Origin: Oopsacas minuta
Lineage: Eukaryota > Animalia > Porifera
NCBI GenBank assembly: GCA_024704765.1
Contig: JAKMXF010000022.1
Coordinates: 573,055 to 637,054 of the forward strand
Direction of reading: 5' to 3'
DNA: 64,000 bases
The notes under the pieces were generated by a model. That model was not told the DNA's origin, did not search any database, and was given only the letters and a program-made list of their open reading frames with translations. Each line of letters begins with the position of its first letter. Position 1 is the first letter of the stretch. Position numbers and translations under genes: made by a program. This document shows, piece after piece, positions 42,083 to 47,186 of the stretch.

Positions 42083-42742
42083 CTATTGAGTTTTGTGTTC
42101 ATTTTCAGAATCCTGAGTGGTCTCAGTGTTACATTGGTCTGTCTCTAAACCAGTTGGTATATTTTCAATATTTTCTGCTTCTTTCATAATTACTCCAGAA
42201 GTGACGGTAGTATCTGTAGTAGTATTAACAGGCTGGGGACTACTAGATGATTCTATCTTTTGTTTCTGAGGTTTCCTCTGCTTAGGAGGCGGTAGAATCG
42301 GACTTTCTAAGTCTATCGTAACAGGTCCGTCGTTCTCAATAAGAATTTGTGAATAAGCTCCAAACACTCCTGATTTAATAGCATCACTCTTATAAAGATG
42401 TCCAAATCTTGTAACACAATACTCAAATATATCTTTAGAAGTATCTCCCGACATTGCTTGATGGAAATCTGGTTTGTTTCCTTTTAGCACACAGCAAAGA
42501 GTAAACTGACTCAAACATAGAATTTCTAGCCCAGCATCTCTCACACTAACTTCCCATTTCTTACCATTAACGTCATCAAATAGTCTTAAATTAAGGACTT
42601 TATTTACAATATACTCAACTTCTTGGAGAGTATCATTCTTGTTAATCCCCAATAATAAACATAACCCCCTTCCTATAGAACTGACCAGATTACCATCTAC
42701 TGACGCACTGGCACGTAGTACACGCTGTATGATCACTTTCAT
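42083..42742 (-). CDS. DTD1: D-aminoacyl-tRNA deacylase 1 with an acidic/Thr-rich C-terminal extension
   Basis: MKVIIQRV, SIGRGLCLLLGI, SQFTL, GNKPDFH, FGA...ENDGPVT (Gly-cisPro motif). Confidence 0.95.
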   Translation of the reverse strand: MKVIIQRVLRASASVDGNLVSSIGRGLCLLLGINKNDTLQEVEYIVNKVLNLRLFDDVNGKKWEVSVRDAGLEILCLSQFTLCCVLKGNKPDFHQAMSGDTSKDIFEYCVTRFGHLYKSDAIKSGVFGAYSQILIENDGPVTIDLESPILPPPKQRKPQKQKIESSSSPQPVNTTTDTTVTSGVIMKEAENIENIPTGLETDQCNTETTQDSENEHKTQ

Positions 42743-43170
42743 ATTTGCAAATATTTTCTTTCTACCAAATTAACTAAGTAACTTAAAGATTAATTATAGA
42801 ATGCTATAGCTAGATATATCACAATAACTATACAAAGACTATGTAAAGATTATGATGTACTTGTTCTCATCCGTCTGGAGAGATTTTATGTATTTTTTCC
42901 AAATTTATGGATAATTATTGGGTCACAGATTGTGCAATCTACATTTTTACTACTTTTATAGGTTAAAAATATGTATTTCCTTTTAAAAAACTTATATCGA
43001 AACCATTATAGCGTTCCCTAGAACGTCGATATAACTGGAGTTGACTGTAACTATGATTTTTTAATGTTTCATTGAAATATATGTAATAGAATGCTTGAGT
43101 GAAAATGTTGCGACGAAATAATTATCCAATAATAGTAAGGAACTAGTCAAATCTAAACAGACTATTCCTG

Positions 43171-43698
43171 CTACTTAGCCTCCAGAATATCTATATAAGC
43201 TTTAGATTCTAACCAATCTTTGTCAATCTTGAGCTCAGTCATAAGTGCTTCTGCTATTTCCACTCCTTCCTCTTTGGTTTGTTTTGCTTCCATCAAAACC
43301 TCTAGCTCCATGTAGATACCCAATCCAGCAACTTTATCTAAATGTACTCGTGTTTGTGCGACCATGAATAGTAATCTCTCTTTAGAAACTTCTCCTCTGA
43401 TACCTAGAGTGTTTTTAAGCACTACCTTCATTCCTTCAGGGTCTGGTACAGATGTTTTGAAGAAATCAGACTGCTTGGGACCAGGTTGATCAGTTCTTTC
43501 ATAGTAAATAAGTGTACTTTCAGGATGGTCTACTATTTCTTCTCTCAGTTTGAGACGACCTTTAGGAGTAACAAAAAACGTGTCTCTCTGAGAAATAACT
43601 TTACCTGAAGTTTGAGTTTTCCTAACAAGATATGACTTGAGAGCTTCGAAAGTGCTGTTATCAGGAATGCGAGCTTTAATCTCAATATTCTGGGGCAT
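43171..43698 (-). CDS. CYTH-domain protein (CyaB/class IV adenylyl cyclase-like triphosphate tunnel metalloenzyme)
   Basis: N-terminal NIEIKAR, QRDTFF...GRLKLR, LIYYERTD, V.K.R, RVHLD.V.GLG.YMELEV, AYID. Confidence 0.88.
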   Translation of the reverse strand: MPQNIEIKARIPDNSTFEALKSYLVRKTQTSGKVISQRDTFFVTPKGRLKLREEIVDHPESTLIYYERTDQPGPKQSDFFKTSVPDPEGMKVVLKNTLGIRGEVSKERLLFMVAQTRVHLDKVAGLGIYMELEVLMEAKQTKEEGVEIAEALMTELKIDKDWLESKAYIDILEAK

Positions 43699-43836
43699 TT
43701 GTAATATCTCTATAATTACAAACCAAAAATTGTTATTCTAATTAGAGGTTAATTCCCTATTGACTCTCTAACATAAACTTAGTTACAGTTGACAGAATAA
43801 GTAATAACATTCTAAGAATACAAAAGATAGCAAATC

Positions 43837-43903
43837 GATTCTATGTATTATCAAGTTCAGACCACTCTAGAATTTAAGTCTGAACTGTCATACTCACAGA
43901 ATC
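43837..43903 (-). promoter_or_regulatory. Eukaryotic SECIS element (selenocysteine insertion sequence)
   Basis: RNA 5'-GAUUCUGUG AGU A UGAC AGUUCAGACUU AAA UUCUAGAGUG GUCUGAACU UGAU AAUA CAUAGAAUC-3'. Helix I 9 bp (GAUUCUGUG/CAUAGAAUC), AUGA_/_GA kink-turn core (43891-43887 / 43853-43850), helix II 9 Watson-Crick bp plus a G:U, AAA exactly 11 nt after the core. Confidence 0.9.
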
Positions 43904-43966
43904 TTTATGGTAAAGAAAGGTTTAATAATTCAATGGAGTTACTTTATGTGGTAATACTCCTGATTA

Positions 43967-44179
43967 CTAGCCTCATCCGCCCCCCTTACTGAATCCGGTA
44001 TCTTGAGTCCATTCGTCCTTCTGCAGCTTATCGCGGTTAGCTCTGGATCTGCTACAACTGTTCCGATCTTTAGACTGACTATTAGGATACATTGACTCCC
44101 TATCAGTCTCATCTCGGGTAAACAGACGTTGAATGGATCTGGAGATTGCCGAGAAACAGTCTATGATCAGTCAAACCAT
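43967..44179 (-). CDS. Candidate small selenoprotein (SelK/SelS class, penultimate Sec); 5' end unresolved
   Basis: Open frame LIIDCFSAISRSIQRLFTRDETDRESMYPNSQSKDRNSCSRSRANRDKLQKDEWTQDTGFSKGGG-TGA(43975-43973)-GGC-TAG, with the SECIS core 82 nt downstream on the same strand. Possible starts: ATG 44179 (M-V-TGA-L..., 70 aa) or ATG 44092 (41 aa). Confidence 0.7.
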
Positions 44180-44408
44180 CAGATCTCAAAAGCGGATCTG
44201 ATACAATATATAATATGAAAAATCTAATAATTAAACAAAAATAAATAAAACACAAAAGATTATTTGATAATTCCAGCCGAATTCCTTGGTTAATATATGA
44301 ATTCTAAAATTCAATTATGAAATTAATTCTAATTCGAGATCAGTGACAAAATGCCATTTCAAAATAATGAATTACAAAATCTCCTAACTACAACTAACAA
44401 GGGATTTA

Positions 44409-46628
44409 TTAAAACAGCTGGACTGGTTCTTTCTCGTAAGGACACATCGCGGCTTTACGCGAGATTCGAAGCCGACCAGAAATAGGTTCTATCCCAAAGT
44501 ATTTAACAATGATGACGTCATCTGGTTTAAAAGCAAGCGAATTAGCTAAAATGCCTGACGGATGTAATTGCGAATTTGGCACAAAACTAGGCTCTTCTTG
44601 GTTAGGATAGAGCTCTACCATCAGTCCATACTGACGGACGTGTAATACCTTAGCTCTATAGAGAGCACCAAATTCAAGTTCTGGTACTGCCTGTTGCTCC
44701 AATATGGTGTGTATTGTTCTTAAAGCTTCTGAGTGTTTTTCAGAAGATGCACCGAACAAGTACAAACGACTTGGACTTAATGTGTAGATAAATACGCCCA
44801 AGGACTCCTCAAGTTTACGAACTTTGTATCTCCAACCTGGAGAGGTCAAGGCATCGGTTTTAGATTTAGAATTAATCACAGATGAAACAGGGGCGTTACA
44901 CTTGAGTGAGGGTCTGTGTACAGAGATTACATTCTCCATGAAGTCGAGAATTTTGTGTCTATCTCCCCAACTCCTGTCTAGACACCGACCAATTAGGTCA
45001 ATTGACATGCCATTAAACTCTTTGATATCTAATTGACAGGCAGTGATCCCCTCTCTGGTACCTCCCACCTTCAGGTCCATGTTACCTAAAGCATCTTCTA
45101 TTCCCTGTATGTCGGATAGGATACAGTGTGTACCGTCAGTTTGATAATTATCCCCCAGAATCAATCCAGTAGCTACCCCAGCAGCTACTGATTTAAGGGG
45201 AATACCTCCATCCAGGATAGCCAGAGAGGCACCACATATACTACTCATTGAGGTTGAACCGCTAGAGGATTGTACATCACAAAACAAATTGACGGAGAAG
45301 GGAAAAGAAGTAGGGAGGAGAGTCAGGAAAGCGCTCTCTGCCAGACGACTGTGTCCTAGTTCTCGTCGGCTAGCCATGCCTCTAGACTTAGAATCCCTCA
45401 CTGCATAATCAGGATTAGAGTATCGCAGACAGAAGTTATCGACAGACAAAGTATTTATAATTTCAGTACCAGTTTCTAAGTCATATGAAAATGTGGGTGG
45501 GAGTAGAGACAGAGAGGACAATATTTGTGTCTCACCCCTCTGGAATATAGCAGAACCATGAGTAGCCTTTAGAGGACTCAAACCAGCTGATAGCTCTCTA
45601 ATATGATCAGAACTACGTGCACCCGGTCTCACCCCATGGACTATAGCATTTTCTCTTAAAGCAGCTCTAAACAGAACAGTTCTCAGCTGTTCAAAAGCTG
45701 ATACGGATAGAGTTGGTATTACTTCTAGAGCAGAAGCTCTAAGATTATTAGTTATATTAGTAGATTGTTTACCTCGTTGTAACTTAGGCAGAGTGGAAGA
45801 TAGATTGGATTTTATACAATCAAAATAATTGTCTTTCATTTTGGAATATAGTGTTTGGTCTAGAAGTTCATCTGGTGATTGAACTGACAATTGGAATGTT
45901 GGATTTGTAGCTGCTTTCAATGCATCTAAATGTTTTATAAATTCTATACAGTGCTGGTATGCTATGGATAACATCTCACAAAATTGAGATAGAGAGAGTT
46001 CTTTCGAACTGCCTTGAATCATAGAAATTCCTTCTTCTGTACAAGATACAATGTAGTTAGCCTCACTATTACGTAGCTCAAAGCGATTCGGGTTGATAAC
46101 CCAACAGTTGTTAACAAGGCCTACTCTAACGGCAGCACAGGTATGCATCCCTGGTGTGCAAGTGAGAGAAAGTGCAGCAGAAGCTGCATTAATCGCGGCT
46201 ATTTCTGGGTCATGTGTCCCGTCAGATGCCAAGAGAACACATGAGAGGTTCAGATTGGAGGTCAAAGGTGGAAGAATGGGACGGATAGTCCTATCAATGG
46301 AGCGAGATATCAAAGCAAACTTTTCAAAATGTCTCGAGGAACGTAAAAAGTATTTTTGAGATAGATCAGTAGATATGTGGTGTTTCTCTGAATAGTCAGT
46401 TGTGAATGGATTGCTCATATTCGTATTATTGTTCTGTTGAGTTTCAGAGAAGATAGCCGCCAGAACAGCTGTATTACCAAAATGTACAAGTGTAGCAGAG
46501 TCTGCATGATGTGCTAGCAGACCTCTGCTAATCTCCCATCTCTTACCGGAGAGGGAGAACTTGTGACTAACCACAGGGAGTGTGGAGAAATAACGTGGGG
46601 AACAGAGATGTATTAAATAACGATTCAT
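44409..46628 (-). CDS. PNPT1: Polyribonucleotide nucleotidyltransferase (mitochondrial PNPase), intronless, divergent
   Basis: Two RNase PH domains (SRSIDRTIRP; HGSAIFQRGETQ, RRELGH, SSGSTSMSS, DIQGIEDALGNMDLKVGG, GITACQLDIK), KH-like region, S1 domain (LEFGALYRAKV...GRLRISRKA). Likely start MNRYLIHL at 46628. Confidence 0.93.
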   Translation of the reverse strand: MNRYLIHLCSPRYFSTLPVVSHKFSLSGKRWEISRGLLAHHADSATLVHFGNTAVLAAIFSETQQNNNTNMSNPFTTDYSEKHHISTDLSQKYFLRSSRHFEKFALISRSIDRTIRPILPPLTSNLNLSCVLLASDGTHDPEIAAINAASAALSLTCTPGMHTCAAVRVGLVNNCWVINPNRFELRNSEANYIVSCTEEGISMIQGSSKELSLSQFCEMLSIAYQHCIEFIKHLDALKAATNPTFQLSVQSPDELLDQTLYSKMKDNYFDCIKSNLSSTLPKLQRGKQSTNITNNLRASALEVIPTLSVSAFEQLRTVLFRAALRENAIVHGVRPGARSSDHIRELSAGLSPLKATHGSAIFQRGETQILSSLSLLPPTFSYDLETGTEIINTLSVDNFCLRYSNPDYAVRDSKSRGMASRRELGHSRLAESAFLTLLPTSFPFSVNLFCDVQSSSGSTSMSSICGASLAILDGGIPLKSVAAGVATGLILGDNYQTDGTHCILSDIQGIEDALGNMDLKVGGTREGITACQLDIKEFNGMSIDLIGRCLDRSWGDRHKILDFMENVISVHRPSLKCNAPVSSVINSKSKTDALTSPGWRYKVRKLEESLGVFIYTLSPSRLYLFGASSEKHSEALRTIHTILEQQAVPELEFGALYRAKVLHVRQYGLMVELYPNQEEPSFVPNSQLHPSGILANSLAFKPDDVIIVKYFGIEPISGRLRISRKAAMCPYEKEPVQLF

Positions 46629-46723
46629 GGTATTAATGACGGAGAGATTGTTTAAAGTTGAGTAGATTGTAGCATCTAACGAGTTAAACAAAGAAATAAT
46701 AGTAATTTCACTAATTTGGTATA

Positions 46724-46940
46724 CCGTAAACTGGGGCCACTTTGGCCCACTGGGTTTGCTTTAGCCCAAATATCAAAGTTTCAAAGAAACTAGATTAGAT
46801 TCAGTATTATACTTGAAAATGACTTGCCAAAATTTTAACGAATTTTCAAATATCGGTAGACAATTTCGAATACAAATACAATATCTATTCGATACGTAAG
46901 CAATTTTCAATATTTGGGCCAAAGTAGCCCCAGTTTACGG
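46724..46940. mobile_element. MITE, 217 bp
   Basis: 25-bp TIRs CCGTAAACTGGGGC(C/T)ACTTTGGCCCA; TA on the left, CA on the right. Confidence 0.85.
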
Positions 46941-47186
46941 CATATAAATAGCAGATATGGAGACGAAAGGAACCTTTCATAGTAGTTACGCCCAATTAAG
47001 TTATGTAACATGGACTAATACCGTCAAATTGACACATGGCTTGAATTTTCACAAATTATTCCTATCAGAGAAATCAAGAAGAAAATGAAGATTATCAAAT
47101 TGTTAAAGCATTAATTATAATTATCCTACAATGCAATTAGTAAGTGAGTTTAAGAGGTAATTACAGACTTTTAATCATAAAATTAA

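Follow-up and report, generated by a model that had tools for sequence, protein, structure and literature searches.

What, if anything, is encoded in the short interval between a PNPT1-like gene and a gene for a CYTH-domain protein in the genome of Oopsacas minuta (Hexactinellida)? The initial annotation of the window, that is, the whole 64,000-nucleotide stretch of DNA that was analysed, had proposed that this interval hides a selenoprotein gene with a penultimate selenocysteine (Sec) in a G-G-U-G end, and this proposal is borne out. Taken jointly, our observations are best explained by a minus-strand gene of one exon that has escaped annotation, probably encodes a protein with two Sec residues and appears to be limited to the glass-sponge lineage (Table 1). 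The ORF track overlooked it because UGA is read there as a stop.

Table 1. Features of the selenoprotein locus and its neighbours (window coordinates)
Feature	Position	Strand	Remarks
Small selenoprotein CDS (predicted)	43967..44179	minus	70 codons + TAG; ATG 44179-44177, TAG 43969-43967; one exon
PNPT1-like polynucleotide phosphorylase, 739 aa	44409..46628	minus	Upstream neighbour; synteny anchor
CYTH-domain protein, 175 aa	43171..43698	minus	Downstream neighbour
Candidate spliced-leader acceptor AG, uaucag|AUC...	44198..44199	minus	18 nt before ATG; predicted
First in-frame UGA, codon 3, read as Sec3	44171..44173	minus	TGA invariant in 6/6 genomes
Amphipathic N-terminal helix, codons 4-20, L-I-I-D-C-F-S-A-I-S-R-S-I-Q-R-L-F	44120..44170	minus	Includes invariant Cys8
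Invariant internal Met30, start of the ORF-track ORF	44090..44092	minus	Surroundings vary; possible reinitiation site
Second in-frame UGA, codon 69 (penultimate), read as Sec69	43973..43975	minus	Followed by GGC (Gly) and TAG
Proximal 3'UTR hairpin, GGAGU...ACUCC outer stem	43935..43960	minus	Begins 6 nt past TAG
SECIS, type 2-like	43837..43903 (helix I extended)	minus	AUGA 43891-43888, AAA 43875-43873, GA 43852-43851

Five related assemblies (ENA) were retrieved via the adjoining PNPT1 gene, giving, with O. minuta, a comparison of six genomes. The PNPT1 proteins of these relatives show 57-76% identity, versus at most 34% for those of named animals, and from this identity together with the shared gene order we infer that all five are glass sponges. 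The small gene occupies the PNPT1-to-CYTH gap, on the same strand, in each of them. Its reading frame is kept throughout, with a product of 68-70 residues (70 in O. minuta) and with all indels multiples of three. An aligned UGA and a covarying SECIS, for which the initial annotation had proposed to search relatives, were both found: the two in-frame TGAs coincide with the O. minuta positions in 5/5 relatives, and the SECIS has accumulated compensatory changes. Given that the ORF, both TGAs and the SECIS all recur in the same intergenic gap of five relatives, the gene is not a product of chance.

The SECIS element was originally described as canonical, and it holds up as such. With Rfam in permissive mode on a short stretch, RF00031 (SECIS_1) is matched across the full model (1-64 of 64) at 43841-43899, minus strand, with a score of 36.7 bits (E 3.4e-5; gathering score 35), a match that is missed, as an effect of filtering, when the whole window is scanned at the gathering threshold with default filters. 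The element consists of helix I, the AUGA, a 10-bp helix II, the AAA, a mini-stem and the GA, and the stretch 43837-43903 folds with a dG of -24.3 kcal/mol (z -3.8), a value that none of 200 shuffles attained. The previous estimates of a 67-nt element about 82 nt from the UGA were essentially right, the second UGA and the AUGA being 81 nt apart. Across the six genomes, the columns ATGA, AAA and TGAT are invariant, and the quartet, the AAR motif and the two helices are all in place; helix II is 98% paired and contains five compensatory pairs. In the element as a whole, 10 pairs are changed on both sides, a covariation score matched by 0 of 500 shuffles, and 90.8% of the cells are paired, versus 31-45% in slid controls. 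The orthologous elements score 42.9, 34.5, 31.4 and 29.7 bits with SECIS_1 in four relatives; that of the fifth (L005) is not reported by Rfam even on 621 nt, and it aligns with the others and folds alike. A separate possibility, that the SECIS serves PNPT1, was rejected, the PNPT1 frame closing with a TAA ~520 nt upstream.

The end of the ORF is as first described (TGA 43975-43973, TAG 43969-43967) and reads AAG GGG GGC GGA TGA GGC TAG. The pattern GG(N) GG(N) TGA GG(N) TAG is found in all six genomes, the Gly codons varying synonymously. Upstream of the codon-69 UGA lies a conserved tail, W-x-x-D-x-x-F-x-x-x-G-G-Sec-Gly; downstream there is just the Gly codon, itself varying synonymously between GGC and GGA, and the stop. 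Shortly after the stop codon, the mRNA would form a proximal hairpin, the outer helix of which is 100% paired in 6/6 genomes, with G-U changes only and z scores from -2.1 to -3.1; the mRNAs of SelS, SelK and SelO carry such proximal stem-loops (PMC6844570).

The other end of the gene presents a less familiar picture. In each of the six genomes, it opens with ATG-GTN-TGA followed by 17 near-invariant residues, and the Val codon preceding the first TGA varies at its third base alone (GTT/GTG/GTC). Over codons 1-20, first, second and third codon positions contribute 3, 1 and 15 variable sites, respectively (chi-square p 1.2e-4). The pN/pS ratio amounts to 0.05 for the whole set and to 0.00 within the close trio, with dS being ~1 or saturated between lineages. 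This third-position bias and the low pN/pS across codons 1-20 argue that the codon-3 UGA is translated. Conservation sets in exactly at the ATG, and in three relatives (L005, L006 and L007) an in-frame TAG or CAG acceptor directly precedes it. The comparison of the six sequences is decisive in placing the predicted opening of the coding frame at ATG 44179 and not at the inner ATG 44092. Hence the range of 41-70 aa initially given for the product stands at its upper value and fails at its lower one, the best-conserved coding part lying upstream of the inner Met. Coding constraint on both sides of a conserved UGA, as looked for in eukaryotic selenoproteins, is found at codon 3, with Met-Val upstream and the 17 residues downstream.

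We are aware of no earlier description of a selenoprotein with Sec at codon 3, which is the most start-proximal Sec position known to us, and the gene offers a natural test of how near the gene start Sec insertion can occur. Translation would begin at AUG 44179, and the codon-3 and penultimate UGAs would both be recoded by one type-2 SECIS. As a natural case the gene is remarkably compact, with 70 codons, UGAs at both extremes and a lone SECIS beyond the second. The clear protein-level selection on the codon-3 UGA implies that recoding is possible as soon as the ribosome has formed a single peptide bond. Certain SECIS elements confine Sec insertion to C-terminal UGAs, so that the efficient decoding of the two UGAs by a lone SECIS is presumptive; the codon-3 case bears on this positional restriction as well as on when and how SECIS, SBP2 and eEFSec engage the ribosome (PMC3737529).

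The product is predicted to be an unusually simple protein. AlphaFold2 models a helix at residues 5-21 (pLDDT about 80) and a 4-residue turn at 49-52, with the remainder disordered and with neither a globular fold nor a coiled coil. Codons 4-20 are identical in three of the five relatives and show one conservative change each in L004 and L007. A hydrophobic moment of 0.61 and a mean hydrophobicity of 0.25 mark the N-terminal helix as surface-seeking and amphipathic, and no transmembrane helix is detected anywhere in the protein with a 19-residue Kyte-Doolittle window (maximum mean 1.25 versus the usual 1.6). The helix may dock the protein onto a membrane surface or a partner protein, and the near-invariance of this 20-residue N-terminal Sec/Cys segment points to a specific partner or chemistry. 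The middle linker is fast-evolving, charged and disordered, and rich in Ser, Arg, Asp, Lys and Gln. Cys8 is the only invariant Cys, none being conserved in the C-terminal 25 residues.

The affiliation of this protein was sought extensively. No Pfam family was matched by any of the six orthologues at E<=10 (models of SelK and SelS being presumed to be among these families). An exact look-up of the 39-aa product of the ORF-track ORF returned no record. An exhaustive phmmer search of 1.84 billion protein representatives gave 0 matches, and among 5.8 billion proteins a word-indexed search found no candidate for the 65-aa piece that separates the Sec codons; the six-species profile retrieved 32 candidates from the same number of proteins, none at E<=10. 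The sole match in a sequence-profile search of the PDB (E=2.2) is meaningless, and the best score in a feature search of the ESM Atlas (0.55) amounts to low recognition and gives no lead. Two degenerate DNA patterns for the N-terminal peptide found 0 occurrences in JGI metagenome contigs, a collection that may hold no glass-sponge DNA. The literature searched contained nothing relevant on hexactinellid selenoproteins, and selenoproteins go unmentioned in the O. minuta genome paper. New families of eukaryotic selenoproteins are seldom found, and any reconstruction of the selenoproteome of ancestral animals depends centrally on sponges.

The protein is not a SelK or SelS member, being set apart from both by the lack of a profile match and of a transmembrane helix. 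The argument for homology made in the initial annotation is not supported, none of the orthologues having a Pfam match: the "SelK-like helix" on which it drew is strongly amphipathic and not membrane-spanning, and the SelS-like "ANRDKLQ" falls in the poorly conserved middle, where S-R alone is invariant. The accompanying guess, that this might be a new member of the class and not a canonical SelK or SelS, fared better and is supported. SelS, ~189 residues long, is anchored by a membrane hairpin or transmembrane helix and possesses a long coiled coil, a p97/VCP-interacting motif and a Cys about 14 residues before Sec that forms a selenenylsulfide, and SelK combines an N-terminal transmembrane helix with a Gly/Pro/Arg-rich cytosolic segment. 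The O. minuta protein lacks the membrane anchor, the long coiled coil, the p97/VCP-interacting motif and the Cys of SelS; unlike SelK, it has an amphipathic helix and no Gly/Pro-rich stretch, and its Sec3 has no counterpart in either. With SelS it shares the penultimate Sec in a G-G-U-G end, found here in 6/6 genomes, a disordered C-terminal tail and a conserved proximal stem-loop directly past the stop codon, and with SelK a very small size, a Sec located 1-3 residues from the C-terminus after Gly-Gly, a disordered tail and, again, the proximal stem-loop in the mRNA (PMC6844570). Common to SelK, SelS and the O. minuta protein are only the GG-Sec-Gly tail and the proximal 3'UTR hairpin.

Two other kinds of selenoprotein are instructive with respect to possible function. 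In animal thioredoxin reductase, Sec is likewise penultimate, within a flexible C-terminal Gly-Cys-Sec-Gly arm, the proposed role of which is to move back and forth between substrates and a redox centre in the N-terminal part. The likeness is one of mechanistic analogy only: the O. minuta protein has no flavoprotein domain and no Cys beside Sec, and consists of 70 residues versus about 500. SelL resembles it in having a short ORF with one SECIS for two UGAs, but the two Secs of SelL (U-x-x-U) are two residues apart inside a thioredoxin fold, whereas here they are 66 apart, at the ends of a protein with no globular fold. By analogy with two-Sec proteins such as SelL, the chemistry is likely to be that of a diselenide or selenenylsulfide redox pair. 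As for the mechanism, we infer, purely by analogy, a small redox protein with a flexible Sec tail, which might act on a partner or on the Sec3/Cys8 centre at the N-terminus much as the GCUG tail swings in thioredoxin reductase or as Cys and Sec pair in SelS.

Several other interpretations of the locus have to be weighed against a two-Sec protein of 70 residues. The selenoprotein could have only 41 residues, starting at the inner AUG 44092, with AUG-GUU-UGA left outside the protein as a three-codon regulatory uORF. The inner Met is invariant in 6/6 genomes and opens the ORF listed by the ORF track, and a three-codon uORF would permit efficient reinitiation. This is nonetheless very unlikely, given that protein-level constraint is strongest, within the gene, at codons 4-29, a pattern that untranslated sequence would not show, and that codon 4, being CTG, CTC or CTA, provides no conserved near-cognate start in place of AUG. 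It is extremely improbable, in turn, that the ORF is the last exon of a larger gene, with one or more upstream coding exons cis-spliced onto the YAG that precedes the ATG by 0-18 nt in every genome compared: upstream of the ATG, a PNPT1 3'UTR block alone is conserved, the O. minuta acceptor is separated from the PNPT1 stop by just 211 AT-rich, stop-filled nt, an in-frame TGA intervenes between acceptor and ATG, and the RNA-like run contains no joints here, whereas acceptors directly preceding start codons are the pattern of a spliced-leader genome. Finally, the protein might be a highly reduced member or orthologue of SelK or SelS that, in glass sponges, lost the greater part of its length along with the transmembrane helix. 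L-I-I-D-C-F may loosely resemble the start of the SelK membrane helix. The G-G-Sec-Gly end, the small disordered tail and the proximal 3'UTR stem-loop (PMC6844570) are all compatible with such an origin, and the demosponge Amphimedon encodes one SelK and one SelS (Amphimedon selenoproteome paper), which implies that the ancestor had both. However, neither Pfam nor profile nor single-sequence searches gave a match, there is no transmembrane segment, coiled coil, Gly/Pro-rich stretch or conserved Cys ~14 residues before Sec, and the extra Sec3 is unmatched in both families, so that a reduced SelK or SelS seems unlikely.

The transcription of the locus raises the further question of whether the two-Sec protein is its sole product. 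In the RNA-like run, depth, which was summed over assembler contigs in 150-nt bins and is therefore a poor measure of abundance, rises from 4.6k at 44210-44360 to 146k at 44059-44209; counted in the same way, it is 93-146k over the ORF versus about 1-3k in the SECIS bin, that is, ~30-100x lower. There are contigs over the ORF and a separate one over the SECIS (43750-43904, depth 962, at least the PNPT1 depth), with no listed piece spanning both. Given the lower depth over the SECIS, most transcripts may end before it. The idea that the deep signal comes from a known non-coding RNA was rejected, as the SECIS alone matched Rfam in 43000-45000. As this gene shows, even in well-assembled genomes ORF-based annotation conceals short, apparently highly expressed selenoproteins.

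Conceivably, then, the gene has a dual output. With selenium and a SECIS-bearing mRNA, the 70-residue two-Sec protein would be made; with a SECIS-less transcript or in selenium shortage, ribosomes would terminate after Met-Val, begin anew at Met30 and terminate again at the second UGA, releasing a 39-residue Sec-free peptide with a Gly-Gly end. We regard this as possible, short of probable. The fall in RNA depth occurs near 43905-43935, just past an AUUAAA at 43926-43921 and before the SECIS, Met30 is invariant, as is the Gly-Gly preceding the second UGA, and human SelS provides a precedent, with SECIS-less transcripts and a UGA-terminated product that is degraded by CRL2 (PMC5133445). Yet the drop is read from contigs summed in 150-nt bins, with no poly(A) junction seen, the AUUAAA is not kept in relatives, and the 39-residue peptide is hypothetical. 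A more elaborate version, which we consider doubtful, envisages a glass-sponge micro-selenoprotein family in which one SECIS decodes the third-codon and penultimate UGAs and the codon-3 UGA doubles as a selenium/SECIS checkpoint: on the abundant SECIS-less transcripts, or with Sec-tRNA in short supply, failed recoding would result in release of Met-Val, reinitiation at Met30 and termination at the second UGA, yielding the 39-residue peptide with Gly-Gly as a C-terminal degron. Should there be such a checkpoint, one gene would give rise to two products, the ratio of which reports selenium status.

Whichever products are made from the two-Sec gene, its mRNA is probably capped by a trans-spliced leader, added at about 44197, as suggested by the rise in RNA depth there and by the YAG shortly before the ATG in each genome. 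Another glass sponge, Aphrocallistes vastus, has a trans-spliced leader, and in the RNA-like run of O. minuta leader-like letters of non-genomic origin, the same in both cases, adjoin positions 46677 and 42783 on the same strand.

The gap between the PNPT1-like and CYTH genes contains a real, conserved, unannotated selenoprotein gene on the minus strand. The end of this small gene reads AAG GGG GGC GGA TGA GGC TAG, and 81 nt separate its UGA, the second in frame, from the AUGA of a SECIS, the 3'UTR hairpin that directs the decoding of UGA as selenocysteine (Sec). The Rfam SECIS_1 model, covered in its entirety, matches at 43841-43899 with 36.7 bits against a gathering score of 35 (E 3.4e-5 for that search); a scan of the whole window at the gathering threshold did not report the element because of speed filters. 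With helix I extended, the SECIS spans 43837-43903 and folds at -24.3 kcal/mol (z -3.8), a stability that none of 200 shuffles attains. Given the match, the fold and the sequence reading, the initial annotation was correct in placing a SECIS and a G-G-G-UGA-G-stop frame on this strand of the gap, and also in noting that the ORF track had missed the frame: the track holds only a 39-codon ORF from ATG 44092.

Elements of the small selenoprotein gene and its flanking genes
Feature	Position	Strand	Remark
PNPT1-like gene	44409-46628	minus	upstream neighbour of the small gene
Second in-frame TGA	43975-43973	minus	sequence reading
TAG	43969-43967	minus	sequence reading
Proximal 3'UTR hairpin	43935-43960	minus	starts 6 nt past TAG; conserved
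SECIS core, AUGA	43891-43888	minus	
SECIS core, AAA	43875-43873	minus	
SECIS core, GA	43852-43851	minus	
CYTH-domain gene	43171-43698	minus	downstream neighbour of the small gene

The CYTH protein is recorded under GCA_024704765.1, contig JAKMXF010000022.1, and papers connect this accession prefix with the glass sponge Oopsacas minuta. Six proteins closely related to that of PNPT1 (57-76% identity) lie on ENA assemblies; identity to the best matches in named animals does not exceed 34%. Five of these six contigs continue beyond the gene on its downstream side, and the order of PNPT1 and CYTH is preserved in each of the five. In four of these relatives, Rfam reports SECIS_1 in the gap on the same strand (42.9, 34.5, 31.4 and 29.7 bits); the fifth, L005, yields no SECIS_1 report, and its SECIS region aligns column for column with the others and gives the same fold at -24.1 kcal/mol. 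The same small frame, of 68-70 codons, lies 5' of each SECIS, both TGAs align in all six genomes (O. minuta and the five relatives), and all length differences are multiples of three. An aligned UGA and a covarying SECIS were what the initial annotation had proposed to seek in relatives, and both are present: helix II, with 98% of cells paired, shows compensatory changes at 5 of its 10 pairs. When the SECIS and the proximal hairpin are pooled (29 pairs), both sides change in 10 pairs, 90.8% of cells are paired versus 31-45% in slid controls, and the covariation score is reached by none of 500 shuffles. The outer stem of the proximal hairpin, GGAGU/ACUCC, is paired in every genome and varies through G-U changes only, so that conservation of structure and of sequence are inseparable there. 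Mammalian SelS, SelK and SelO mRNAs, all encoding C-terminal Sec, carry proximal stem-loops at the same position, and in SelS, the 3'UTR region adjoining the stem-loop modulates recoding (PMC6844570).

The conserved frame starts 29 codons upstream of ATG 44092. In all six genomes, it opens with ATG-GTN-TGA followed by a 17-residue block, L-I-I-D-C-F-S-A-I-S-R-S-I-Q-R-L-F, which O. minuta and three relatives share without any change; a single substitution sets apart L004 (S to A) and another L007 (L to A). Over codons 1-20, nucleotide differences at the three codon positions stand at 3:1:15 (chi-square p 1.2e-4), and the pooled pN/pS is 0.05 (0.00 among the three closest genomes), with synonymous divergence between the main lineages at about 1 or saturated. 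Upstream of the ATG, which is immediately preceded by TAG or CAG in three of the six genomes, conservation ends abruptly. The third-position bias, the low pN/pS and the sharp edge at the ATG imply, therefore, that codons 1-20 are translated, and a coding signature past codon 3 is incompatible with ribosomes always stopping there. Because a SECIS is present, the first UGA, too, quite likely encodes Sec, which would make the product 70 residues long, with Sec at positions 3 and 69 (Sec3 and Sec69). For the Met-Val-UGA start, the comparison between genomes thus speaks for a second Sec rather than a mini-uORF. Of the 41-70 residues initially allowed, the upper value thus stands; the shorter version from the inner ATG does not, since strong conservation starts 29 codons earlier.

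Beyond codon 20, pN/pS rises to 0.31 (codons 21-30) and 0.66 in the middle, and is 0.38 over the last 17 codons; Glu28, Met30, a Ser-Arg pair, Trp57, Asp60, Phe63 and the Gly-Gly preceding Sec69 are invariant. AlphaFold2, run on the six-row alignment, predicts a helix at residues 5-21 (pLDDT about 80), with the remainder disordered (mean pLDDT 62). The helix is strongly amphipathic (hydrophobic moment 0.61-0.70) and, with a best 19-residue Kyte-Doolittle mean of 1.25, too weakly hydrophobic to span a membrane, in line with the earlier remark that no strong transmembrane segment is present.

Like SelS and SelK, the small protein ends in Gly-Gly-Sec-Gly and has a disordered tail, and its mRNA likewise carries the proximal hairpin; a demosponge, Amphimedon, has one of each (PMC3473315), so a drastically reduced SelK or SelS comes to mind. 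However, the small protein lacks the profile match and transmembrane helix of both families, the coiled coil and Cys partner of Sec found in SelS, and the Gly/Pro-rich segment of SelK, whose absence had been noted at the outset, and its position 3 carries an additional Sec. It is, therefore, filed under neither family, and such a reduced form seems improbable; the SelK/SelS likeness initially proposed for the body is not supported. No Pfam family matched the six orthologues at E<=10, and no relative was found among PDB sequences, in a word-indexed library of 5.8 billion proteins (single-sequence and profile queries), in an exhaustive phmmer search of 1.84 billion representatives or in the ESM Atlas; two degenerate DNA patterns had no match in JGI metagenomes. 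Gene callers stop at UGA and so leave Sec-containing homologues invisible in protein libraries; what these negative results exclude is, therefore, chiefly Cys forms and known families. As far as the tools used can see, the family is new.

Three of the four sequencing runs covering the window show flat, DNA-like depth; the fourth, X4, is RNA-like: its depth drops to zero between genes and differs from gene to gene. Summed contig depth in X4 is about 700-1,800 over PNPT1, 22,000-46,000 over CYTH and 93,000-146,000 over the small gene (43908-44209). Immediately 5' of the gene it is 4,600, and in the bin of the SECIS about 3,000; the contig 43750-43904 has a depth of 962. This 30-100-fold fall between ORF and SECIS could stem from a predominantly early 3' end, for which an AUUAAA lies at 43926-43921, although this signal is not conserved in relatives; just as plausibly, it is an artefact of deriving depth from contigs, against which the tool itself cautions. 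Human SelS also has transcripts that lack the SECIS, and CRL2 degrades the product that terminates at their UGA (PMC5133445); with its invariant Gly-Gly ahead of Sec69, a UGA-truncated small protein would have a similar C-terminus.

In X4, the same non-genomic stretch, 5'-...AAATCTTCATAAAAAACTTAC in minus-strand orientation, is attached at 46677 (the PNPT1 5' end) and at 42783, both in minus-strand genes. It probably represents the 3' terminus of the spliced leader of O. minuta and is not encoded in the window, searched with up to 2 mismatches. A trans-spliced leader is on record for another glass sponge, Aphrocallistes vastus (PMC10282587), and the O. minuta genome paper mentions neither selenoproteins nor trans-splicing. 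The X4 depth rise fits a candidate leader acceptor at 44199-44198, 18 nt 5' of the ATG. In O. minuta and in L004, the relative closest to it, these 18 nt (44180-44200, minus strand; L004 6319-6339) make up a short perfect inverted repeat, CAGATC...GATCTG, which the other four genomes lack.

The analysis shows a single SECIS, two conserved UGAs and translation past that at codon 3. In the mechanism we propose, this SECIS would decode both UGAs, and Met1 would be removed, because Val follows, so that Sec becomes residue 2. The amphipathic helix might dock on a membrane surface or a partner, and the flexible tail could then pair Sec69 with Sec3 (diselenide), or with Cys8 or a client protein (selenenylsulfide), much like the swinging Gly-Cys-Sec-Gly arm of thioredoxin reductase and the Cys-Sec pair of SelS. 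Sec insertion is limited to C-terminal UGAs by some SECIS elements, whereas others permit any position (PMC3737529); if both UGAs are decoded, this SECIS must permit both extremes. The underlying system, SECIS-dependent recoding with a C-terminal Sec tail, is already known; the putative Sec at codon 3, the two terminal Sec residues and the very small size are unusual.

The neighbourhood presents further features. In the window (42700-46700) and in L003-L007, MRPL28, PNPT1, the small gene, CYTH, D-Tyr-tRNA deacylase and squalene epoxidase follow each other tightly in one direction (in some relatives, a histone deacetylase comes instead after CYTH), with the order kept and spacers of 130-700 nt; in a trans-splicing genome, this chain looks operon-like. 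In L005 (6400-7750), the PNPT1-to-selenoprotein spacer is enlarged to about 1.55 kb, probably by an insertion, and holds GC-rich repeats GGAGCCCCGTACAGGG (twice) and a called 80-aa ORF of no family. Just 3' of the PNPT1 stop (44330-44380, minus strand), a block TTTGTAATTC ... ATGGCATTTTRTCAC ... GATCTCGA is largely kept in relatives, including the short contig L002, and only partly in the most distant, L007; an RNA contig over the PNPT1 3' end terminates at 44334, and the block is probably a PNPT1 3'UTR or 3'-end-formation element. Just 5' of PNPT1, an element of about 225 bp (46720-46944) with 30-nt terminal inverted repeats, 93% complementary, reaches depths of 15,000-69,000 in the three DNA-like runs versus a baseline of 100-200, with many contigs branching or inverting there, and looks like a very high-copy MITE-like transposon.
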